From Anolis carolinensis (taxonomy: Eukaryota): a stretch of 64,000 bases of DNA. Under the pieces are notes generated by a model. That model did not search any database. It was not told where the DNA came from and worked only from the letters and a program-made list of their open reading frames with translations. Below, piece after piece: positions 45,258 through 62,800 of the stretch (the stretch's first letter is position 1; each line of letters starts with the position of its first letter). The stretch lies in NCBI RefSeq assembly GCF_035594765.1, contig NC_085842.1:30418782-30482781 (forward strand). The letters are read 5' to 3'. A program made the position numbers and the translations under genes.

Positions 45258-48200
45258 TCCTAACAAGGCCAGAACCTCAGAAGATAAATGACATAAGGCT
45301 AGGGAGTTAAACAGGAAAGGAAAGGGTAATAGAAAGCTTACCTGTGTGTATTGGGTGATAGATGATACCTGTGTAGGGGCAGACAAACTGTTCCAGGAGC
45401 TTCACATTCTGTGAGATGAAAAGGGAAACCAGATGTTTACATTTCACAAATCAAAGGAGGACTAATGAAACATTCAACCTACTTCAGACAACCCCTTTTT
45501 ATGCCTTCAACAGGTCAGGAAATTACAAAATAGGAACATTGTGCAATGGTCACAAAGTATGGAACATCCTCCATGGAGAATTTTACTGTTCCTTCCTAAA
45601 CAGCTCTTAAATTCCTAGCCAGATATCTTCCAGAAGACTTTAGGGCACTTTCTTTCTTTTCCTCATCTTCCCCTGTTGTCCTGAACTAACAGAACTGCTT
45701 AATAATTTCAATGCACCATTCCCAAAAATTCAGTTGGCTTTCATACAGTTTTTAATATGTTTCTTCAAGTTGCAAGGATTCAATACCTGAATAAGAAAAT
45801 CTTGTTCTTCTTACCCTATAATCCAGAAAAAGGTTTTGGTCTCTGCAGATGGGACAGGGGTTCCCACACACATGCTTCCCTCTCTAAAGGAATACAATGT
45901 TGTTGAATGTCAGTTTCTCAGTTTAACACCATTAAACAAATACAAGACTTGTTGTAAATGTATCAAAAGGCAGGAATTGCAGCTCTTTTTTTTTTACATA
46001 AACAACATCATTACTGTGCATTAAAGTTCCATTATTTTGATTTCCATCAGGACAAGTCAAAACATAGGTGTTTCCCTCTACCAATTTAAAGCAGACTAGA
46101 AAAAGTGAAAAGCAACAAAAAGATACCAAGTCTGATTGACAATGCTAGGTCCATCAACTACTAACATAGCTTTCTGGGCCACACTTGCTTGTTCAAATAT
46201 AAAATACAGGAGAATATTCAGCATTCTTCCCAGTTGCCCCTCCCAGCTCTATTGTGTCTCATTTCCATATTTCCAAACCAACTTGAGGACAGATTGATTT
46301 TTAAACAAAGACAAAGAAAAATCATTATGCCATCTTGACTTCTCAAGATGAGGCAAACTAAAGAAAATATTAACACCTCTTTCACAATCCCGTAACTTCT
46401 GGCACTCACAATGCAAGTCTTCCGTGTCTTCTGTGGAGGAATTGGGCCCTTGTGATTACGTCTGTAGCCAAACCAGACAGGATTGCTGCCATATCGTTCT
46501 ATGTATTCTAAATGGACAAGATAGAAAGAGACACAGTCATTCACAGTAATACCGGTAGTTTACCAGTGATATTCAAAATATACAATTGCTTTAATTCCAA
46601 CTGTTCGCTCAAAGCTAAGTAACTATTTCATACACACATGCCAGACATTGTAAATCACATGCTAATTTGACAGAAGCAAGGTTTAATCCAAGCCACACTT
46701 GCTTGTAAAAAAGACAAACTGATCCCAATGGGATCTACTCTTTAGTAGGTATGCCCAGCTTAAATACCAGTACCTCCAAATCCACCAGATCCTGTCTGAT
46801 CTTGGAAGCTAAGCAGGGTCAGTGCTGGTTAGTACTTGGATGGGATCTGGCCAATGAACACCAGATACTGTGTGCTATATTTTGGAGGAAGGAACCGGCA
46901 AAATCACATTGCCTAAGAAAATCCTATAAAATCATGGTGTTACTGTAAATCAACAGGTGACATGAAGGCACAGACACATAAGTATCCCTCCATCTTGACA
47001 TTCAGAAAGAGAGTGAAAATGTGGCTTTGGGATCAAGCCTTCAGAGAATAATGATAGTGCAATAGATGGATTTGGAATTATGTGCAATGACTACTGGAAT
47101 GGCCTGGCTTACAATTGCGAATAGCATGGTTTTAATAGTGACTGTAATGTTTTTAAATGTTTTAATGTATTTTAATTTTAATGTTTATTTAATTGTACAT
47201 TGTCCTTAAGGCATTGAATTGTGGCCTATGTGTAAGCCACCTTGAGTCCCCTTCGGGGTTGAGAAGGGCGGGATATATAGTAAATAATAAATAAGTGCAC
47301 TGCAAGGCAAGTTATAATTTTTCCAAGAACAAGAACAAAGGACTTCTTACCCAATTTCAGCTGTTAGAATGAAGACAATTCAGGGAAACCCATACAGGTT
47401 TTTGTAAGAATGTACTGCAAGTTCAGTCGAGTTGTAAGAATAAAAACAAAATCCTGTGTCTAAAATGAATATGCTTTCATTCTAAGTATATATCCTTTGC
47501 GTTTCTGTGTCTCCTGCAATTGGTTGGTGCTGGGGTTGGTTCTTTTAAAAGAACTGGGAGATGTAGGTGCTCTGTAAATCTGTCCACCCTGGCTTACTCA
47601 GAGAGGATGGGAGAAAAGAGCTGGCGTGAGCTAGATCACTTTTAACATTCATTTTAAACAAAGTAGGCTTGCTATCTACACATCTACGACTACTTTTTGA
47701 ATCTCAAATTCCTTGTTTTTCAATAGAATGTTGTTGTTAGTCATTTACAAGTTCAACACAACTTGCTCCAACAAAAAATTGCATAACATTACAGGCTTTA
47801 TCTTTAAAGCTCCCTGGCGCTTTTACGCCCCCCCCCCTCCTAATTCTTATCAGTTCCTGCCTGTAACATTGTCTGCTTCAATCCCAACTGTCCCACTTTT
47901 CACATTTTCCCTGCTATTACCTATGACTTCAACTCTCATCACAGTGCATATTTCCACCAAATCTATTAATGAAACCTATAGCCACTGGAGATTATAATTT
48001 TAGTCAAACTCTGCCTACGACAGACTCTACTGCAGACCATGTACATGATCAGACTATTTGTTCATCTTTAGCCTATGTTGTCCTTACCTAACCCTTACTC
48101 CTCTCCACCCCCACCATTATCTCCTTCACTGCTTAAATTTAGACAGTAAGCTCTCACGAGGGCAGGGATTCAGCTCTCAAATACTCTTTTGCATGCCTGT

Positions 48201-51200
48201 GCTTGTGTAAAGCCTCATGTAAACTAGCCTTCCTTAGCAAAGTTATCCCTAGCTATGTTAGATCACACCTCCTAACATCCTCAGTTTGCATGGGAATATG
48301 TTTCTAAACTGAAAACAAATTAAACAAAACACACAAAAGATATATCATTCTCTTTCACAAACACAAATGCGTTTAGCTGTTCCCCAGATACCTTCACTCT
48401 CCAAGTACTCCCAAGGCTTGTCTTTAAAACGTGATTCTGTGTCAAAACCAACTGGTTCTGTGGATTCATCTTGGCTTACTTCTGTGCTATAAAGGTGAAC
48501 AGCCAATTGCTTGGGTAGCAGGAGACAAGAGCAAGTTATCTTCTAAGGGAAGGCAAAGCAAAGCAAGACAAGCATTAAAGGCTGATATTAGAAATGTAGC
48601 ACTGGAGCACACCTTGTATTGCAAGGAGGACAAATAAATCAGTTGTAAAGCAAATCAAGTTTGAACTCTTCCTAGAAACCATGATGACTAAATTGAGTCT
48701 GTCATACTTTGGACATGTTCCGAGAAGGCATGACTCATTAGAAAAGACAATAGTGTTTGGTAAAGTAAAAAGCAGTAGGAAAAGAGGAAGACTGCATTCC
48801 AGGAGGATAAACTACATGAAGAATGCTATGGCCCTGAATCGGCAAAACCTGAGCAAGTGATTGACGATAGTGGAACTTTGACGTCCCTCATGCGGGTTCA
48901 CCATATGTCAGAGTTCACTTGAAGGTAATTAACAACAATCAAAATGACCAGCAAAGAGTTACCAGAGCTCTAGCAAATTAGAGCAAAGTTTTTAAACATT
49001 AGTTTCATTAAAGACATATTATATGTTGCATGGCAAATAATTTCCTCTAACTTTTCAATATGACAAAATGCAACAAAAGTATTGTATTTTATCCTCTAAA
49101 CTAGTGGAAAAACATTTTCAGTTTACCTGTTTTACTAACAGCAAGCTACAGATATAATTTTGCCACCTTATAGAGGTTATTAAAATAGTGAAGTTGATTT
49201 TGCATTGCACATTCTACTTGAGCCCTCCATCTTATTGTCGCCATTAATTTAACTAAACCTGATCTGACACTAACTATGGCTGGCTTTCAACTAAGGGCTT
49301 AGGCTTCTTTGCAAAATGTGATCAGCTTTACTGCAGACTTACCACTTAAACCATAGTAACACAGGGAAAAGAAGGGAAAGAATGAAAAACCCTGACTGTA
49401 TGTAAGCTTACATTAGCCTAAAAAAGCATTTTTGCTTCCATTTGCTTTACTACCACTCAGAGTGGAAGTAATTGGTGTGAACGAGAGCCCAACAAAATCT
49501 GAAGGGCCACAGATTCTAGCCTGCAGTTATTGGTTTTTTTCTTTGTCACTGCTTCATGCTTTTGGCCCTGACCTTTTATCTCCATAAAAAATCTAACCAA
49601 AATGAGTGGGAAAGGAAGAAGCACCACCCATTTAAATTGCCAACTTTTTAAAAATGGCAGAATGTTTTTACTGACTTTATGTAAACTTCTCTGGGAGGTT
49701 CTATTGGTTGGAGAGTGAGACAAAAACATTTCAGATCCATGCATTTACATTGTGCTAATAGTGTCATCACTCTTAACACTAACATAACTGAAAGATCAAA
49801 AATTAGTCTTCTGATACTTTAATAGACATTGTCATCTTTTAATCAAATAGGCTTCAGATGGTGCATGAACTTGATCTAAAAATGAAACATACAAGCCCCA
49901 TTTTGTTGCTGTGCTATAATGCTTCACTGTGTGTTCTACAGGTTGAGCAACCTTATCCGGAGTTCTAAAATCAGAAAAACTCCAAAATTGTTTGCTTTCT
50001 GACAGTTCAATGGACACAAATGTCATCCTGTGCATGCAAATATACAATTACCTTCAGGATATGTGTATTAAGTATACATGAAAAAATTAATATCATATCC
50101 AGATATTAGTAGTGCAGCGGAATAAACCGCTGAGATGCTGACCGAAAGGGCAGTGGTTTGAATCCGGGGAGCGGAGTGAGCTCCTGCTGTTAGCCCCAGC
50201 TCCTGCCAACCTAGCAGTTCGAAAATATGCAAATGTGAGTAGATCAATAGGTACCACTCCAGCGGGAAGGTAACGGTACTCAACGCAGTCATGTCAGGCA
50301 CATGACCCTGGAAACATCTACGAACAAAGCCAGCTCTTCGGCTTAGAATTGTAGATGAGCACCAACCCCCAGTCAGACATGTCTAGAGTTAAAGTCAGGG
50401 AGAAATCTTTGCCTTTCCCTACAGTAACATATTAAATATAATACTACTGATAATATATAATGATATCCTGTTTTATTATTATATATTTGTATATTTTAAG
50501 TTGTAATGTTTTTGATTGTGAGTCACTTTGACTCTTTGAATGGAGAGATAAAGAGGGATAAAAATAAATAAATATGGTTGCCATAAGTTGGAAATGGCTT
50601 AAAGCAGTAGTTCTCAACCTGTGGGTCCCCAGATGTTTAGGCTTTCAACTCGCATAAATCCTAAGAAAAAAGGTAAAGGTTTCCCCTGACGTTAAGCCCA
50701 GTCATGTCTGACTCTGGGGGTTGGTGCCCATTTCCATTTCTAAGCCGAAGAGCCTTGGAGGTGTCCATAGACACCTCCAAGGTCATGTGGCCGGCATGAC
50801 TGCATGGAGCGCCGTTACCTTCCCGCCAGAGCGGTACCTATTGATCTACTCACATTGGCATGTTTTCGAACTGCTAGGTTGGCAGAAGCTGGAGCTAACA
50901 GCGGGCACTCATTCTGCTCCTGGGATTTGAACCTGCGACCTTTCGGTCTGCAAGTTCAGCAGCTCAGTGCTTTAACACACTTCACCATCGGGGCTCCCTT
51001 ACCCATAAATCCTAACATTTGGTAAATTGACTGGGGTTTCTGGAAGTTGTAGGCCAAAACACAGGTTGAGAAGCACTGCCTTAAAGGCACACAAGAAAAC
51101 CTGGCTGAATATGCTGAATTTTGGTTTTGTCAAGAAAGCCCAACAAATTCTACACTGTTATGACAACAATGAGGCTAAAGTCCTTTCCTAATTCTGCCAC

Positions 51201-51548
51201 CTGCATTCATGTATCCTAGAATTAGACGAGATCGCTTAAGCGGCTGAGGGGGAAAAGAAAGGGGCCTGAGGCTATTAGGAATTGTGGGAGTTGGGAGTCC
51301 AAAACATCTGGAGGACCCAAGTTTGCCCAGGCCTGACATACACACAGAGAAACAAATCTAGGAGGCGTGAGTCTCTCGCTCTCCCTCTTTCTACTATCAA
51401 TAACAAGTTCGGCCTCTTCCTAAGCGATAATTCTGCTAAATGCGGAGCCCTCCCTCACCTGGACTCCGAAAGGCTTTCGGAGAGCCGCCCGGAGCGCCAC
51501 ACGGCCTGCCGCCCGACACACAAGCGAGGCGCCTATGGAGGCCGCCAT
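41913..51548 (-). CDS. MRPS18B: 28S ribosomal protein S18b, mitochondrial (mS40); 7 exons, 249 aa
   Basis: Exons 90+151+98+69+67+60+215 = 750 nt in frame; motifs [50 protein letters not shown]. Confidence 0.96.
42613..42943. mobile_element. Tc1/mariner MITE
   Basis: TIR cagtagagtcttgcttatccaac / gttggataagcaagactctactg, TA flanks. Confidence 0.85.
44498..44557 (-). CDS. MRPS18B: MRPS18B exon 6
   Basis: [20 protein letters not shown], 60 nt, AG/GT. Confidence 0.94.
45342..45408 (-). CDS. MRPS18B: MRPS18B exon 5
   Basis: [22 protein letters not shown], 67 nt. Confidence 0.94.
45815..45883 (-). CDS. MRPS18B: MRPS18B exon 4
   Basis: [23 protein letters not shown], 69 nt. Confidence 0.94.
46410..46507 (-). 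CDS. MRPS18B: MRPS18B exon 3
   Basis: [33 protein letters not shown], 98 nt. Confidence 0.95.
46780..46978 (+). mobile_element. 5S rRNA-derived SINE (5S-Sauria-like)
   Basis: gtctgatcttggaagctaagcagggtc...tggttagtacttggatggga matches the 5S A/IE/C boxes; followed by an RTE-like tail gaaggcacagacaca. Confidence 0.75.
48392..48542 (-). CDS. MRPS18B: MRPS18B exon 2
   Basis: ...[15 protein letters not shown], 151 nt, cccttag acceptor, gtatct donor. Confidence 0.88.
50105..50420 (+). mobile_element. Sauria SINE
   Basis: gaccgaaagg...gcaaatgtgagtagatcaataggtacc...tcaggggagaaatcttt. Confidence 0.85.
50670..50998 (-). mobile_element. Sauria SINE inserted in hAT MITE 50605-51078
   Basis: Flanking repeat cataaatcctaa; the host MITE has a 7/8 TSD (gcttaaag / ccttaaag). 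Confidence 0.85.
51459..51548 (-). CDS. MRPS18B: MRPS18B exon 1 (mitochondrial presequence [30 protein letters not shown])
   Basis: aagATGg, Arg/Ala-rich with no acidic residues, donor cag|gtgagg. Confidence 0.92.
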
Positions 51549-51600
51549 CTTGGGCCGCAATTACTTTACGCATGCGCCCTGAGTCGCCCCTCGAGCCTCA
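51540..51600 (-). promoter_or_regulatory. MRPS18B promoter (YY1 site overlapping the ATG; NRF1 site)
   Basis: aagatggcggc and cgcatgcgc within a small CpG island. Confidence 0.65.
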
Positions 51601-54087: not shown

Positions 54088-54828
54088 TATGGGTTGCTGT
54101 GAGTTTTCTGGGCTGTATGGCCAAGTTCCAAATAGGAGAGGCATGGGCAAACTTCGGCCTTCTAGGTGCTTTGGATTACAACTGCCACAATTCCTAACAG
54201 CCTATCGGCTATGAATGTTGCAGTTGGCCACCTTGATTGGCATTGAATGACCTTGCAGCTTCAAAATCTGGCTGCTTCCTGCCTGGGGGAATCCACCGTT
54301 GGGAGGTGTTAGCTGGCCCTGATTGTTTCCTGTCAGGAATCCCCTTTGTTTTTTAGTTTTGTTCTTTATTTACTGTCCTGATTTTAGAGTTTTTAAATAC
54401 TGGTAGCCAGTTTTTGTTCATTTTCATGGTTTCCTCCTTTCTGTTGAAATTGTCCACATGCTTGTGGATTTCAATGGCTTCTCTGTTTAGTCTGACATGA
54501 TGGTTGTTAGAGTGGTCCAGCATTTCTGTGTTCTCAAATAATATACCATGTCTAGGTTGGTTCATCAAGTGCTCTGCTATGGCTGACTTCTCTGGTTGAG
54601 TTAGTCTGCAGTGCCTTTTATGTTCCTTGATTCGTGTCTGAGCAATGCTGTGTTTGGTGGTCCCTATGTAGACTTGTCCACAGCTGCATGGTATACGGTA
54701 GACTTCTGCAGAGGTGAGAGGATCGCTCTTGTCTTTTGCTGAACGTAGCATTTGCTGGATTTTTTTTAGTGGGTCTGTAGTTTGTAGGTTGTGTTTTTTC
54801 ATCAGCTTACCTATGCGGTCAGTGGCAG
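54088..54828 (-). mobile_element. Penelope (Poseidon-type) 3' fragment: GIY-YIG endonuclease and pLTR end, interrupted by half a hAT MITE
   Basis: ORF 54353-54802: VYRIPCSCGQVYIGTT, RIKEHKR, SAIAEH, REAIEI, NFNR. Confidence 0.9.
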
Positions 54829-55224
54829 ATCCGACATTGTTATTTCAGGTGGAATTCATAGCCAATTTAATTATTATTGTAACATTCTTCAACAGAAATG
54901 TATTTATTTCAATTTTGGATAATAATAATTATGTTTATTTATACCCCACTTTTTCTCTCAATACGGAGACTCAAAGGAGCTCACAATTAAAAGCATTGCA
55001 ATCGAACTTAAAATATATAGTATGCAAATATTAAACAGTATTAAACATCATTATTAAAAACAATTCAAGTTAAAACCATAATCACCATAACCATAAGGTG
55101 TTATAGGGTGTGTGTGTATTTTAGGAGAAACCCTGTATTTATATAAACCACAAGAACTGCCATTCATGCCGAAAAACAAAAGCTTAATTTATTTAAATAC
55201 ATAGCATCCTTTTAGCCTGGAAAG

Positions 55225-56846: not shown

Positions 56847-59800
56847 GTAAGAGCGGAAGGAACAAAGCTATAACTGGGTAGTGGCCAGTGATAAATCAAT
56901 TTAATTGGATGAATTTGTCATAGTCTTCAATATTTTTAAATTTGTTAAAAATTGGGTTGTGTTTCTTTAAAAAAAATTGACGCTTATATAATGTATGTGT
57001 AGGTATGTAATACTGGAAAAAGTAACTGGCAATCTACAAATAAAGATTGCAAAATGGCTTGGGGGATTCATTTAAAAACTAATCCAGTATGTATTTTTTT
57101 AAAAACTTGTTAATAGGGAGCAGGAATCTCTATAGGGCTCAAAATGAGGTCTAGCGTGCTTATAATGTTGTAGCTACCTATATTCCCCCACCCCAGTGCA
57201 ATATGGCGGTATTTTCTCTTTTGTCCCTGACAAATGGCATTGTACCTTTCCTTTACAGGATGTTTCCCTTTTTATTTTATCCTACCTCCCCCATGTGTGG
57301 AGGGAGAAGAAAAGGGTGGGGGGGGGTGATGGTATTAACCCTGCAATGATCAGTAATGAGGTTTGACTCCGGCACTTGCTGGATCATAACTTGCCACCCA
57401 AACTGTTAAATAGGTTCTAGTTTATAGAACTGACATAAAATGATTCAGGTGGTGTATGTGATGGAGGTTGTATTGCTGTAGTTTCTTCTTAATAGATTCT
57501 GAAGCCTTTGCTTTATTTTTTCCCCCTAATTGTCTGTGCTCTTAAAATGGCGTCTCTGCCTCTTTCCTTCTCCAAGAGCCCACAAGGCTTTCTGGGCAGG
57601 GAGCTGATGTAAGCAGCTTGCAACAAACTCCTCCCCCTGAATAGCTTGTGCTTGGCACCCAAGCGGGCAGTCATGGAAAGGAGGGGGGGGGGGAAGTGGC
57701 TTACCCTTCCGCCTTGCAACCTTTTCCACAAGGATCTAACCAAATTCCACTCCCGTTTCCTCTATAGGAAATTTAGGTTACAGCTTGAGCAGTGCAAAGT
57801 ATGATCATAAATCCGCCGAGTTTCTCTTTTTTTAGGTTTCAGCATCACACAAGACCTTCGGATTTCAGTGCTTGCTCCATGTTTGCTGTGCTTTGTTGAG
57901 ACAAATCTGTTAAGTGTTACTATCAGAAAGGCAACTGTTTTGTATCCTCTTCTCTCCCCTTCCCCCATCCCCTTGCCCTGTTTTCATCTTCTGGGTCTCT
58001 TTGAAGGAATGGAGCAGGGGAGCATGTTTCTTAATTGAATCAGATCTAATTGTTGACATGAAATGCTACCACTGGACCCCAGATATTTAGCCAGTGTCAG
58101 TGACACTTGCTAAAACTAACAAGGTTCTGTATGGGGGATCTTGGCATTTTCTCTGTCCACATGTACACCAAAGGGGGTGGGTGGGAAGGGGGGAGTCTTG
58201 TATTAATTTGCCACATTCCACCGTTCCTGTACAATGTACTAGGAAAGAAGTGATCATTAGGAAAAAGGGAATCCAGCACTTGTATTACTTCATCAAAGGG
58301 AGGGGAACAGCCACAATTCCACCTGGTAAGCAAAACCTTTCTGGTATTAATTACATCTCACAACCTTCATTTCTGTTCCAGACCACTTTGTTCATTTTTA
58401 ATTTTTTTTTTTGCTGCTGTTCTCTTCCATTGTCAATACCCTAAAGTGACACCTACTGATGCATGCAGGCTGTTAAGGGTATTAGTATTTTTGCCAATCT
58501 GTTGAGGACATTAGTGTTTTCCAAGCTGGTTAATTCCTTAAAACAGGATTCTGATTCCTTGAATGGTTCTGCATGAACATCAACTAGCATTTCAGTAATG
58601 CTGCCCTTGAGACTTCTGCATTAAGAGTGAATGCTGTGAAGGGAATGTTCCACAAAGTGAAACTGAAATATCTTTGTCTCCGGTGGTAGCATTTCATATT
58701 GTAAGTCCCAAACCCACAACCTGATGACACTGTTCTGGCTTTTTAACCAATTGAATGCACCTGCCATTTCACACAACATTGCAGGGTGCTTTAGTCAGGA
58801 CAATGCTGTGTCTTTATTGGGTTGAATAGAATGAGAATGTAAAATTGTAAATGTCCATTTAATCCTACACTTGGATGACCATGCACCTGTTGTAGTCAGA
58901 TTTGCCTTTCAATAGGAAAACACTGATAAAGTGGGTTTTTAAAAAAAAAATACAACAGTCACATGATATCTGGGAATATTTATGCAGCAAAAATGGAAGC
59001 TGCCAAAATGGCATTTAAAATAAATATAGGTTGGGATAGAGGTTCACATTTCCATAAATGCACACTAATAATTTCTGTTACATCCATTAGAAAATGCTTA
59101 GAAACCCAACAGCTAAGGTCTTGTGTTTTAGGGGATTCAGTTTTGAGATAGCAAGCAACTGCCTAGCTGATAAGTTACCCAGCACTAAAGCAGGCAAATC
59201 CAGTAGATCCTAAGATTCCCTTTAAAACCATTGTTCAAAACATTCCTTTTTAGGAAAAAAAAACAGTGTTAGGAATGCTGGTTTACATAAGATTCCAAAA
59301 CAATTCTGGAAGCCTTACAAGAACTACTGCCCAGTTAAATAGTTCTATAGATATACTTCCACTGTCTCCAACACTGGTCTTTTTCCTCATGATTTGACTC
59401 CTGCCAGATGTTATAGTTACATTGTTATGTCAGCCAGTAATTTGATGAGGCAATGAAATGTCACAAGACTAGGGTAGCTGGTTGAGATTGTCTTGTGTAT
59501 ATGTGCAATGTAAAAACATGCAGCTGGAACCAGTCCTCTTAAGATTTCCCAATAAGACAAATTCTCATCCTTCAATAGCTGCTGAAGAAAGTGGGTGGAT
59601 TCTCCTTTACCCTAAATTTGAATCATGATAGTTCAACCTGCAATCTCATCCCTTGCATACTGAACACTTAAGGGGAGAGCTATCCCTGTATCCAAAAATA
59701 ACTGCTCTTCATTCTATATTGACAAAGAATAGTCTGCATTCCTGAACATACTTAACAGGAAACACTGAGGCCTAATTTTCATGTAAGTGTAACAAAAATT

Positions 59801-62800
59801 TGATGCATAACACACCGGAAGAGTGGGCTATTTTTTTTTTCATTTAAGAATTTGAGTTCACAGTTGGGCAATAATTTTTCGAGATATGGTACAGTACGAG
59901 TTTTGAGCCAAGTGTGAATTCTGGGCTTCCCTTCATAGACCACAGTGGTTTTCTAAAAAGATCTTTTTGAATTGTTTTTGGATAGTCTGACCAACCTATA
60001 GCATATTTTTTTGGCAAGGCAACATGCTCTATAAAAATGTATTGGTATAGGGCTGTAACAGCCTTGATTTTGATAGGTACATAGAAATTTGGGGGAGGGA
60101 TGTTAAATGTAGTAAATCTTCAAATGCATATGTTGGAATATTGAAACCTAATATGCCTAATTTCTCAGGTTCTCAGTTTTTTTTAACTTGTTGCCAAACC
60201 AGGAACTACCATGAGAACACCCAGTTGGATTCCAGTGCTTAGAAACACTGATAAGAGAAACCAGACAGAATATTTCAGAGGTTTTGCTACTAATACTTAT
60301 TTTAAAAGTGCTTTTTGGGACTCCCTTTTTTTGAAATGCTGGCTTCGAGTGGAATTGCGTATGTGCCACGGTTCAGTTTCCCCATGCTTGCAAGACTAAA
60401 AGTTCTTCAGCACACTGCATTAACGAACTATCTTTCATAGGAAGCGTAACAACTGTTCCTTAGTAATTCCCCTGGGAAGATGTTTTAAAAACATTTGCTA
60501 ACATATATTAATAGAATTGTAGGATATGAAGATGTGTGTCTTCATTGGATTAAAATCCTGATTCCATTCCCTAAACTGTAAGTACTAAACAACTCTTCCC
60601 ATGGAGTCCAATCCTGAAGAACTCAGGTGAATTGGAGCAATGGGAAGATAAAATAAGATGAGTAGATGAGTATAACTTTATGCTATAGTAGTACTGTTTA
60701 TCCCCCTCTACTGCTGCATAGTGAGTTCCTTATCCTGGCCTTGACACTGATACAGCTTCCACATTACCTCTGTAAGCCCAAACTGATATTTCTAAAAAGC
60801 TGTGTTGGATTCTTTGCATGATAAGCAAAGCAATATTATGAGTTTAAGCTGCTATAGCTAATTGACTTGCATCTTACACCACCAGTTTGACAAAAGATGA
60901 ACAATACAGTCCTGTTGGGAGTGTCCCTTGGGAACTGAGGTTTCCTGAATTGCAGGTGTCCCTCCCCAAGTACATTTTGCTTTCAAGTCATATGTAAGAT
61001 TGGTGGATTATAGTTATACAATGTATTTTGGGGTGAAAGCTTGAATGTTAATTTAGAAGTACCAGGACTAAATATCTTATTCTCACTTTTCCGATATACA
61101 GTAAAAGCTGCAGTGTTTGTATTGCAAATTTGATTATGTTAAACTTCAGAGTTACACGGTTGTCTAACAAATAATGTTAACGTTTATTCCTTGTATTTTA
61201 CTGTGTTTTGTTTTTATATTTTATGAAAATAGCATTTATGGTTTAATTTTGTTAAGCTTGTATATGATCCAAACAACTGTTAGGCATCTAAATACTTGCA
61301 TTTATTTTGCTGCATATAGCTCCTAATCCTGCAGCTTGAAGGATCTTTGTGAATTGCTTTGATTGGAGAAATTCTAAGATTTCAGTGTGTTTGATCCAAC
61401 ACCTGGCTCCTGGTTCTCCTGGCCAAGTAATTTTGGAAGGCTAGACCCCCGCCCCCCCCTTTTTTTTTACATAATTGGCAGGTTTAGAGTACCGATATAG
61501 CTAGAATTTAGAGTGACATATGCATTAAAGGCCTCAAAAGTAAAGGCAGTGTGACTGAATAGCTATATTATGTGCGCCCTTTGATTGCATTTGTGGAGTT
61601 ATATAAGGCAGCAGGTGCAGGGTCTGTAGACCTGATACGTTTCAAAAGATTAGCATGAGTTTGTTTCCCAGTTGTCTTTTTTAACAATAGTACATATGAA
61701 AAGCATATGCCCTTCTACTCTAAAATTGCCTTGCTGCAATAAAAGACACTTGGGGGGGGGGAGTAGCGTTTTATGTAAAAGAATTTGATTGGATATCTGA
61801 CAAATATTACTTAGGCATGTTCTGTGGCTCAGTTCTTCATATATGTCTGTTTTTGGTACAACATTTTGATCAGTTTTGAAAATGTCAGGTTTCAGCTGAT
61901 CAAAGGTGTCATTTCTATTAAGAGATCCCAAAAAACTAATGTCTACACACCTTGATACTTAAGAATTTTAGGAAATAAAAGCATTGTCCTGTATTGGTTG
62001 TAATTGAAAGGCCAATATTTTAAATGATGAGGATTTCCCCCAGTTAATTATTTGATAAATGGCATCTAGCTTTAAGGTGTGTTGTTTATTGTTGCTTGTC
62101 TTGCATGTTGGTTTATTTGGCCCAGTTACTGAATAAAAGTCTTGTGCCCTGTTCTAATTTGTAAAGGAATTCTTGGGCACTTACAGTGAAATCATATCAG
62201 ATAAAGAACCAAAGTGCAGTTATTTTGTCTGATTGGACTTTTAAGATTGGATTCTTAACTTTTAACTTGGGGAATTTATATCTGTGATTAATTAAATATG
62301 CTTTTAGGGTGAATTTTTGTGATGTATGTCAAATTGCACTTCTCAGCTTTGCCAGATAGATGGAATTGCAGTTCAAGATGTATTTGCTAGAATTACGAAG
62401 ATTATTATAGAAATTGGAAAATATAGTTTAGGTCTTGAGTGTAGTTTGCATATCGAATTACATTACTCCTGTTTTATTTGTTGTTTGACCAAGTGTGAAA
62501 AGATTAGCAAAGCATACTTGTTACATTTCATATGAAAGAAGCATGGGCACAATAAATTAGCATTGTAAGAAGTTTGACTCTATAGAGCTATTGAACAGTT
62601 AAAGCTGTCAAACTTTTGACGCTATTTTTATGGAAGAACAATGCTTCTGATGTGAAGTAGGTGCAACATTGCTTATTTTTATGGAATATCCAATATTATA
62701 AAACACTGAAAATTAATTAAATACGTATTCATGCTGTTTGGCATGGCTTTGTGTACTCTATTCCTATACATTTTCACTTGGGACCAGGTCTTGCTGAATT

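Follow-up and report, generated by a model that had tools for sequence, protein, structure and literature searches.

Two complementary 19-nt arms bound ~640 bp of DNA in the 64-kb stretch of the Anolis carolinensis genome analysed here (the window). Are they the termini of an old transposable element, or do they encode the two strands of an RNA stem that selection has retained? Lizards, snakes, turtles and birds all retain the pairing between the arms, so the element is probably a functional RNA structure rather than what is left of a transposon.

The inverted repeat in the window

The left arm (ATGAAATGCTACCACTGGA = AUGAAAUGCUACCACUGGA) occupies 58058-58076 of the + strand and pairs with the right arm (TCCGGTGGTAGCATTTCAT = UCCGGUGGUAGCAUUUCAU) at 58679-58697 of the same strand to give a 19-bp long-range stem. 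The spacing between the arms is 602 nt. A single position of the 19-nt inverted repeat is non-complementary, T58073 opposite G58682, and this T/C difference in the DNA becomes a U-G wobble in the + strand RNA. A 4/5-nt internal loop separates the stem from an 8-bp extension formed by agatattt (58081-58088) and aaatatct (58666-58673), both on the + strand. The stem with its wobble and the extension across the internal loop were described in the first-pass annotation, and both are borne out by the window sequence. The extension is lineage-specific, as is the hairpin at 58086-58114 described below. The 3′ half of the extension adjoins a 5-nt deletion relative to other squamates in the alignments, Phrynosoma has only a 5-bp equivalent (AGGUA/UACCU), and the other species are without one. 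We found no helix extension conserved across species; those that exist are idiosyncratic.

The repeat is rare. With up to 3 mismatches allowed, the arm pattern occurs at two sites only in the 64-kb window, where 0.02 matches are expected. These sites are the arms themselves, in agreement with the first-pass annotation, and nothing else similar to the element was found in the rest of the window. Of 40 Markov-simulated 64-kb windows, none contained an inverted repeat whose 19-nt halves lay within 1 kb of each other and had no more than 1 mismatch. The arms are mutual best partners within 56.9-60.9 kb, at -32 kcal/mol vs. -18.5 kcal/mol or weaker elsewhere. Resemblance between them, in the window sequence, dies out beyond ~42 nt.

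Searches for other identities returned little. No Rfam family reached its gathering score in the window, and at E <= 1 only rox2 (E = 1) fell within 57950-58800. The bacterial promoter/terminator scan gave nothing relevant. A tRNA/SINE origin of the right arm, suggested by a by-eye D-arm resemblance, was unsupported by ARAGORN, and a CTCF-like motif, also a by-eye idea, was a poor match and was dropped. Exact 19-mer matches in JGI metagenomes (ten) are single microbial sites with no inverted partner and no wider similarity, and were put down to chance. None of six short ORFs of the window had an exact match in the protein collection. Three side ORFs had no match in Pfam, so we make no claim of a Penelope endonuclease at 54356-54844.

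The locus and its arms across sauropsids

The comparison set consisted of 10 other sauropsids, i.e., six squamates (including a gecko), two turtles and two birds, which makes 11 species with the window. The orthologous locus was defined as the DNA upstream of MRPS18B and was taken on the PPP1R10 sense strand. MRPS18B proteins served as anchors, and the divergent upstream 10 kb was fetched from eight genera (Phrynosoma, Sphaerodactylus, Naja, Podarcis, Terrapene, Pelodiscus, Accipiter, and Dryobates). In addition, a chance ORF over the core of the loop matched ORFs on two foreign contigs, one of them from a skink. Both contigs are collinear with the window over 55.5-60.8 kb, and the collinearity extends beyond the arms. 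A second homologous-protein search with the same ORF returned the skink ORF alone.

In 11/11 sauropsids the two arms flank the core and keep their order. MRPS18B is on the - strand. A gene with Med26/TFIIS-N and CCCH domains, whose product starts MGSGPIDPKELLKGL, is divergent from MRPS18B and lies downstream of the right arm; this is PPP1R10 (PNUTS). Its first coding exon is 3′ of the right arm in birds, and falls outside the fetched DNA in the window, the other squamates, and the turtles. Judged by synteny, the arms probably lie in the PPP1R10 5′ non-coding region, after the promoter that this gene shares with MRPS18B and ahead of its first coding exon. On the same grounds, both arms are likely to be intronic and to be transcribed as one pre-mRNA. 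The locus of the frog Ascaphus had no recognisable homologue of the arms or the core, and is not a precise empty site. The first-pass annotation had held that absence from orthologues would count against a selected structure; in alignments with the turtles and other sauropsids, the arms are at the orthologous site in 10/10.

The arms are 76-100% identical to the window, vs. 30-82% for the remaining loop, which in birds and turtles has 30-51% identity. The left arm is identical in 7/7 squamates, has 2 changes per turtle and 4 per bird, and holds invariant runs of 9 and 6 nt (10 species). The right arm carries a 13-nt invariant run at 58683-58695, the longest in the whole domain (10 sauropsids).

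Across the 11 species, 206/209 species-by-pair cells are able to pair, 12 of them as wobbles. The three broken cells are an A.G at position 12 in Pelodiscus, a C.C at position 4 in Dryobates, and a terminal A.C in the skink. Shifting the partner by 1-3 nt reduces the paired cells to 32-56%. Three pairs are altered on both sides and are still paired. Positions 1 and 19 each run from A-U through G-U to G-C, position 2 has exchanged U-A for G-C, and the pair is U-G or U-A at position 16 and C-G or U-G at position 12. The remaining 13/19 pairs never vary and are therefore uninformative on pairing. When the 13 parsimony-inferred substitutions were placed randomly, a mean of 13.8 cells was broken, compared to the 3 observed (P = 0.003). 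Random placement yields three or more double-sided kept pairs with P = 0.008, and with P = 0.05 when GC bias is modelled; these double-sided changes are located at helix ends and on bird branches, in a set of 11 species. GC-biased substitution alone fairly often converts A-T pairs to G-C, so that the evidence from the birds is weakened. The duplex energy on the sense strand is -25.6 to -33.4 kcal/mol across the 11 species, and the sense-strand duplex is stabler than the antisense in 10/11. The observed substitutions preferentially preserve sense-strand pairing, in line with the selected structure that the first-pass annotation had proposed.

Predicted folding and the conserved core

In isolation, the 640 nt are predicted to fold with the stem closed, with z = -2.74 on the + strand and z = -1.27 on the - strand. 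RNAalifold predicted the complete stem independently from 10 species. With 150-400 nt of flank added to the window sequence, the stem is absent from the minimum-energy fold (pair probability ~0), and forcing it costs 10-12 kcal/mol. Of the ten foldable species, about half have the stem in their minimum-energy fold at either flank length, 6 with 150 nt and 5 with 400 nt.

The internal hairpins listed in the first-pass annotation are present, all on the + strand. In the one at 58458-58582, 58458-58468 pairs with 58569-58582 in the RNAalifold prediction from 10 species; its pairs are mostly invariant in squamates and turtles and are broken in Accipiter. The hairpin at 58086-58114, a local palindrome with a self inverted match of 26/29, is found in squamates only; its AGTGTCAnTGACACT is retained among squamates and missing in turtles and birds. 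The mini-hairpin AGCAUUUCAGUAAUGCU at 58587-58603 repeats motifs of the arms and shows some covariation (RNAalifold columns 654-660/683-689). Here UAGCAUUUCA (58586-58595) matches the right arm exactly over 10 nt, and AAUGCUGCC is similar to the left arm. In folds that include flanks, the right arm is predicted to pair with this mini-hairpin instead. The left arm has a predicted local alternative as well, the pyrimidine tract GGCAUUUUCUCU at 58143-58154 (+ strand), which pairs with 58060-58066 in the minimum-energy fold with flanks. The sequence GCATTTTCTC is conserved in turtles and in squamates except the gecko.

A strongly conserved core lies inside the loop at 58188-58387 (+ strand). Identity to the window is 89-96% in the other squamates, 84-85% in turtles, and 52-64% in birds. 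The core carries the 5′-splice-site-like sequence CUG|GUAAGC, in which GGTAAGC at 58325-58331 is invariant (10 species). Further invariant runs in the same 10 species are TTAATTACAT and TCACAACCTT, and the core contains three direct copies of YTKGTATTAMTT. A role in splicing is suggested because the most conserved feature of the loop is a 5′-splice-site-like heptamer with a conserved intronic flank. We regard 58175-58326 as a putative exon.

Alternative explanations and comparison with known systems

A duplex in the sense-strand RNA that is maintained by selection is, judged from the sequence comparisons, the probable state of affairs. We lean, with some reserve, towards the full explanation that the arms form a long-range pre-mRNA stem that loops out an element bearing a splice site. 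Several alternatives need to be weighed against it. The arms could instead be two copies, in opposite orientation, of a long protein-binding DNA motif, set among clustered conserved non-coding elements near the PPP1R10/MRPS18B promoter, with complementarity as a by-product and no function in RNA. The 56.2-58.7 kb interval aligns at 71-76% among squamates and resembles a promoter-adjacent conserved non-coding block. As might be seen in a binding site, 13/19 positions are invariant and the variable ones are mostly at the motif ends, where change would be tolerated, and the GC bias of birds could account for parallel A/T to G/C changes. However, the DNA differences between the arms are mostly of the type that gives a G-U pair in sense RNA (position 16 in squamates, position 1 in turtles, position 12 in Terrapene and Accipiter, position 19 in Accipiter), with one opposite case only (skink position 1), and random placement of the observed substitutions seldom keeps so many pairs (P = 0.003). 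An invariant site of 16-19 nt is long for a transcription factor, and no further copy of the motif was found in the window or the other fetched vertebrate loci (~240 kb), even at 3-4 mismatches. We thus find a DNA motif unlikely. Coincidence, either chance complementarity of two independently conserved stretches or neutral persistence, is scarcely credible. The many conserved blocks in the region do increase the number of possible pairs; against this stand the ~0.02 matches expected per window, the 0/40 simulated windows, the advantage of about 14 kcal/mol or more that the arms have over other partners within 4 kb, and the complementarity kept in 11 species through substitutions.

The form of the element suggests an old non-autonomous DNA transposon or low-copy ancient repeat, inserted before the sauropsids diverged and later exapted, with the arms as terminal inverted repeats that were kept along with the element as a whole and not because they pair in RNA. 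It has ~640 bp, 19-nt termini with 1 mismatch, and a unique interior, the genome is MITE-rich (~20 other such inverted pairs are in the window), and the frog without a recognisable homologue is compatible with a later insertion. Even so, the site is occupied in 11/11 sauropsids with collinear flanks and no empty site among them, and neutral terminal repeats would be expected to decay like the remaining loop over roughly 280 My. As the first-pass annotation noted, there is no convincing target-site duplication: the offset scan yielded a 5-mer (4-nt offset) and an 8-mer with 1 mismatch (24-nt offset), both no better than chance given the offsets scanned. The window and the other fetched loci held no second copy of the element, and a translated search of the core ORF against 1.84 billion representative proteins recovered related sequences from the two orthologous contigs only. 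The earlier statement that the element does not look like a MITE stands for a young MITE, which orthologous occupancy rules out, and no multi-copy sign was seen in the window, loci, or proteins searched. An ancient transposon is a rather improbable source, and such an origin would not exclude a present function as RNA. It is also improbable, to a similar degree, that a selected structure has a different job, as a dsRNA-binding platform (Staufen-type or ADAR) or as the closing stem of a stable intron-derived RNA. Such a structure shares the conservation and pairing evidence of the stem, and the ARF1 Staufen-binding stem is reportedly comparable in size to the 19-bp stem. On the other hand, 19 bp is short for efficient ADAR editing and the duplex has 19 bp only, plus 8 bp in the window. 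It has no Rfam family match, and the splice-site-like heptamer, the most conserved feature in the loop, points to splicing.

If the looping-out stem is the correct explanation, the 19-bp duplex would form between the arms in the PPP1R10 sense transcript, and purifying selection would have preserved the two arms, and their ability to pair, from the ancestor shared by squamates, turtles, and birds onwards. The stem would close a loop of ~0.6 kb whose central element bears the invariant GGUAAGC with its conserved flanks. The specific role in looping out is a tentative suggestion that may well prove wrong. The loop would sequester the splice-site-bearing element, possibly a cassette or decoy 5′UTR exon, and the leader would then be spliced preferentially straight to the exon that follows. 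Local competitors could tune the looping, with the left arm held by GCAUUUU at 58144 and the right arm by the mini-hairpin at 58597. PNUTS plays a central part in regulating RNA polymerase II elongation and termination as well as PP1 targeting, and the PNUTS-PP1 complex controls both of these polymerase steps. The stem might conceivably act as a co-transcriptional sensor in a PPP1R10 autoregulatory loop that combines kinetic choice, splice-site exposure, and mRNA output, a speculation to which we give very little credence. Polymerase speed across the 600-nt loop would set the fate of the left arm, which would either pair with a nearby mimic (GCAUUUU at 58144 or the mini-hairpin at 58587-58603) or stay free until the right arm emerges. 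The outcome would expose or hide the 5′ splice site of the core and so set the amount of productive PPP1R10 mRNA.

The stem joins 19 bp and about -31 kcal/mol with roughly 280 million years of retention around an invariant splice-site-like element. To our knowledge, such stability and such age are seldom combined in the long-range pre-mRNA structures that have been studied experimentally. Our literature search found nothing on structured RNA control of the PPP1R10 leader, and nothing relevant to this element. If the proposal is true, the locus offers a compact and clear-cut example, open to direct testing, of how an exon or splice site is looped out within a 5′ leader, and possibly a feedback mechanism that sets PNUTS dosage. 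The locus also holds a caution for a MITE-rich genome, since a transposon-like inverted repeat can be a conserved structure that is single-copy in the sequence searched.

The element resembles a MITE in its ~640 bp, 19-nt terminal inverted repeat, unique interior, and MITE-rich genome. It differs from one in having no target-site duplication and no further copy found, in being present in 11 sauropsids, and in having arms that are far better conserved than their interior flanks. The FGFR2 IAS2-ISAR stem reportedly has ~20 bp, joins intronic elements several hundred nt apart, is conserved with covariation in distant animals, and acts by bringing or removing splicing control elements. Its stem size and spacing are like those in PPP1R10, whereas the gene and the exon arrangement differ.

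There is a close likeness to PCCRs, conserved complementary pairs in human genes that form long-range pre-mRNA structures (Kalmykova et al., 2021, PMC8052449). In a PCCR-type pair, the two complementary stretches measure about 10 nt or more, lie no more than 10 kb apart, and form a duplex of -15 kcal/mol or below. The PPP1R10 arms, with a spread of 565-1319 nt across the 11 species, fall within these limits of size and energy, and both are conserved non-coding sequence. They share with PCCRs the near-perfect complementarity of conserved, here probably intronic, stretches, and the spread of hundreds of nt, and their substitutions, too, seem to preserve the structure. The stem energy fits the most stable PCCR group (-30 kcal/mol or below), and the exon-like element in the loop, a putative exon in PPP1R10, fits the "looping-out" type. 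Unlike PCCRs, which are from human genes, this stem comes from a reptile genome and was followed across sauropsids, and it is known from sequence alone. PPP1R10 is unmentioned in the text and the searched supplements of PMC8052449. In BRD2/BRD3, unproductive splicing of exon 3b is under the control of complementary pairs (PMC10789245). As in BRD2/BRD3, a conserved pair is proposed to govern a regulatory, non-productive exon in a transcription-regulator gene; the BRD2/BRD3 exon and its effect are experimentally defined and lie in coding sequence, whereas the PPP1R10 element is in the 5′ non-coding leader and is a putative exon. In ATE1, the long-range structures R1-R5 (PMC7797038) have several intronic elements competing for one partner, similar to the mimics at 58587-58603 and 58144 in PPP1R10. 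Unlike ATE1, PPP1R10 has no mutually exclusive exons, and its competition is predicted by folding only. The first-pass annotation's suggestion of an undescribed system was overstated, as the class has been described (PCCRs, PMC8052449; ATE1, PMC7797038; BRD2/BRD3, PMC10789245). Because conserved long-range complementary pairs in pre-mRNA are already described, the PPP1R10 stem is probably of a known general kind.

Inverted repeats in the window

An inverted-repeat search recovered the stem arms at 58058-58076 and 58679-58697 as 19 nt segments that are 95% complementary and 602 nt apart. The sole non-complementary position is T58073 versus G58682, which reads as a U-G wobble on the + strand and as A.C on the other. 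Set across a 4/5 nt internal loop is a further 8 bp pairing (agatattt/aaatatct, 58081-58088 with 58666-58673). The sequence agrees with the first-pass annotation; comparison with other species shows the 8 bp extension, present in the window, to be lineage-specific. The likeness of one arm to the other ends about 42 nt in. The annotation had also claimed that target-site duplications and other copies in the window were absent, and this was borne out. Duplication candidates at the arms were all at chance level, and nothing resembling the element occurs a second time in the window.

The initial likelihood that the arms are transposon ends was high, because the window carries about 20 further inverted pairs of comparable kind, most with MITE termini by eye. 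These short-range pairs (at least 18/19 matches) include 2010-2320, 5698-5821, 30889-31026, 33466-33543, 38574-38697, 40140-40323, 42608-42948, and 50196-50892. Several recur, and their ends look mariner-like (TACAGTAGAGTCT...) or hAT-like (CAGTGGTTCTCAACC..., TGGGCAAACTTGGGCCC). Judged by eye, they are ordinary MITEs, unlike the PPP1R10 element. A 163-aa open frame at 54356-54844 (−) looked like a retroelement endonuclease remnant, but Pfam gave nothing and we left it unnamed.

Orthologous loci and gene context

A chance ORF over the loop interior (58094-58441) served as query against 1.84 billion representative proteins. Just two related matches were returned, both ORFs called on Logan contigs. 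One contig (L011, SRR22184595) is 95% identical to Naja across the domain and is therefore from a snake. The other (L012, SRR31508491) is PacBio genomic DNA from the skink Prasinohaema aff. flavipes (PMC12400806). Each contig aligns collinearly with 55.5-60.8 kb of the window, sequence beyond the arms included, and the two are therefore orthologous loci, not transposon copies.

The − strand carries MRPS18B, identified by the similarity of its exon at 46221-46559 to mS40 of solved mitoribosomes. Exons at 44493-44645, 45310-45450, and 51423-51560 (−) were assigned by visual inspection alone, and Pfam returned no match for the two short pieces 45310-45450 and 51423-51560. With MRPS18B proteins from annotated genomes to anchor the locus, we took 10 kb upstream of it in nine species (Phrynosoma, Sphaerodactylus, Ascaphus, Terrapene, Naja, Podarcis, Accipiter, Pelodiscus, and Dryobates). 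The two Logan contigs were aligned to the whole window, and later local comparisons used the part from 56900 upward. The divergent neighbour of MRPS18B in frog and birds has Med26/TFIIS-N and CCCH domains and the N-terminus MGSGPIDPKELLKGL; it is PPP1R10. The order ATAT1, MRPS18B, divergent PPP1R10 is common to turtle, bird, and lizard loci. In birds the first coding exon of PPP1R10 follows the right arm at a distance of about 2 kb; it was not found in the window up to 64000 or in the squamate and turtle DNA compared. This exon placement puts the element, on the sense strand of PPP1R10, after the shared promoter region and ahead of the first coding exon; it would be intronic. Downstream of the right arm are conserved non-coding blocks at 59356-59503 and 60457-60666 (79-80% identity to skink), with 60482-60613 82-83% identical to both turtles. 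The coding signal of the first PPP1R10 exon was not found in either block.

Conservation and predicted folding

Both arms were found in 7/7 squamates, 2/2 turtles, and 2/2 birds, always in the order left arm, core, right arm. Squamates split from turtles and birds about 280 My ago. No homologue of the element was found in the locus of the frog Ascaphus. Arm identity to the window is 97-100% in squamates, 92% in turtles, and 76-82% in birds, and identity of the rest of the loop is 63-82%, 51%, and 30-35%, respectively. The right arm holds the longest run (13 nt) of columns invariant in ten species. Arm-to-arm spans are 565-742 nt except in Dryobates pubescens (1319 nt), where a 36 nt minisatellite sits inside the loop (L021, the woodpecker locus, 5147-5642; 13.6 copies, 96% matching). 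This expansion doubles the arm-to-arm distance, and both arms are still kept.

Within the loop, a core at about 58188-58387 shows 89-96% identity among squamates and 84-85% to turtles; about 100 nt of it is recognisable in birds. An invariant piece, GGTAAGC (58325-58331), reads as CUG/GUAAGC, a good 5′ splice site match, and the invariant TTAATTACAT and TCACAACCTT lie a short way downstream. Upstream, a pyrimidine tract followed by AG (about 58145-58174) is conserved in squamates and turtles. This arrangement would suit an exon of about 150 nt, either cassette or decoy. Three copies of YTKGTATTAMTT (58197-58208, 58279-58290, and 58341-58352, spaced 82 and 62 nt) lie inside the core, all in well-conserved columns, and could be a repeated protein-binding motif.

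The sense duplex is predicted at −25.6 to −33.4 kcal/mol and exceeds the antisense in stability in 10/11 species. The best partner of each arm within 4 kb is the other arm, by a margin of about 14 kcal/mol or more. RNAalifold (ten species) predicted the complete stem unaided, together with hairpins at 58458-58468/58569-58582 and 58587-58603; these internal hairpins of the first-pass annotation stand, and its hairpin at 58086-58114, a palindrome, proved lineage-specific. Folded in isolation, the 640 nt close the stem (z = −2.74). When 150-400 nt of flank is added, in the minimum-energy fold of the window, the left arm pairs with GCAUUUU at 58144 and the right arm with 58642-58653 or the mini-hairpin region 58597-58610; a fold forced to keep the stem is 10-12 kcal/mol less stable. 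For the other species, minimum-energy folds include the stem in about half of the cases. Thermodynamic prediction of the stem is therefore not robust, and the arm-mimicking partners could be meaningful competitors or mere noise of the model. The mini-hairpin (58586-58604), predicted as an alternative pairing site for the right arm, is conserved in squamates and echoes arm motifs: UAGCAUUUCA matches 10 nt of the right arm exactly, and AAUGCUGCC is similar to the left arm.

Pairing through substitutions and candidate roles

Across 11 species, 206/209 cells of the pair table are paired. Position 1 is A-U in squamates, G-U in turtles, and G-C in birds; position 2 changes from U-A to G-C in birds; position 16 is U-G in squamates and U-A elsewhere; and position 19 is A-U, with G-U in Accipiter and G-C in Dryobates. 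Position 12 is C-G, with U-G in Terrapene and Accipiter and a broken A.G in Pelodiscus. Pairing is otherwise lost only at position 4 in Dryobates (C.C) and at a terminal position in the skink (A.C). When the partner is shifted by 1-3 nt, pairing falls to 32-56%.

The best-supported reading from these comparisons is a selected sense-strand RNA duplex: the arms would pair in PPP1R10 sense RNA and loop out a splice-site-bearing element of its leader. Chance is essentially excluded. In 40 simulated windows, no 19 nt inverted repeat with one mismatch or fewer turned up at a spacing of up to 1 kb, and in the 64 kb window matches to the arms with up to 3 mismatches are just the two arm sites (0.02 expected). 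We also held 13 parsimony-inferred substitutions on their own branches and randomised site and base, which gave a mean of 13.8 broken cells versus the 3 observed (P = 0.003). At least three double-sided kept pairs had P = 0.008, or P = 0.05 with GC-biased bird branches. The case is weakened by the sample of 11 species and by the confinement of double-sided changes to helix ends and bird branches, and the 13 pairs invariant throughout count against its strength, as do the lineage-specific extension and palindrome and the fragile thermodynamic prediction. Rival accounts are a pair of DNA motifs of the same sequence within a conserved block near the promoter, a terminal-repeat element of ancient origin that was exapted, and an RNA role other than looping out.

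The selected duplex would be an unusually stable and old stem in an important gene, with a putative RNA function that is directly testable. Literature searches on PPP1R10 returned nothing on this element, and the gene is not in the text or supplements examined of the PCCR paper (PMC8052449). The element would fit the class described there, conserved long-range complementary pairs in pre-mRNA, of which ATE1 (PMC7797038) and BRD2/3 (PMC10789245) are known members.
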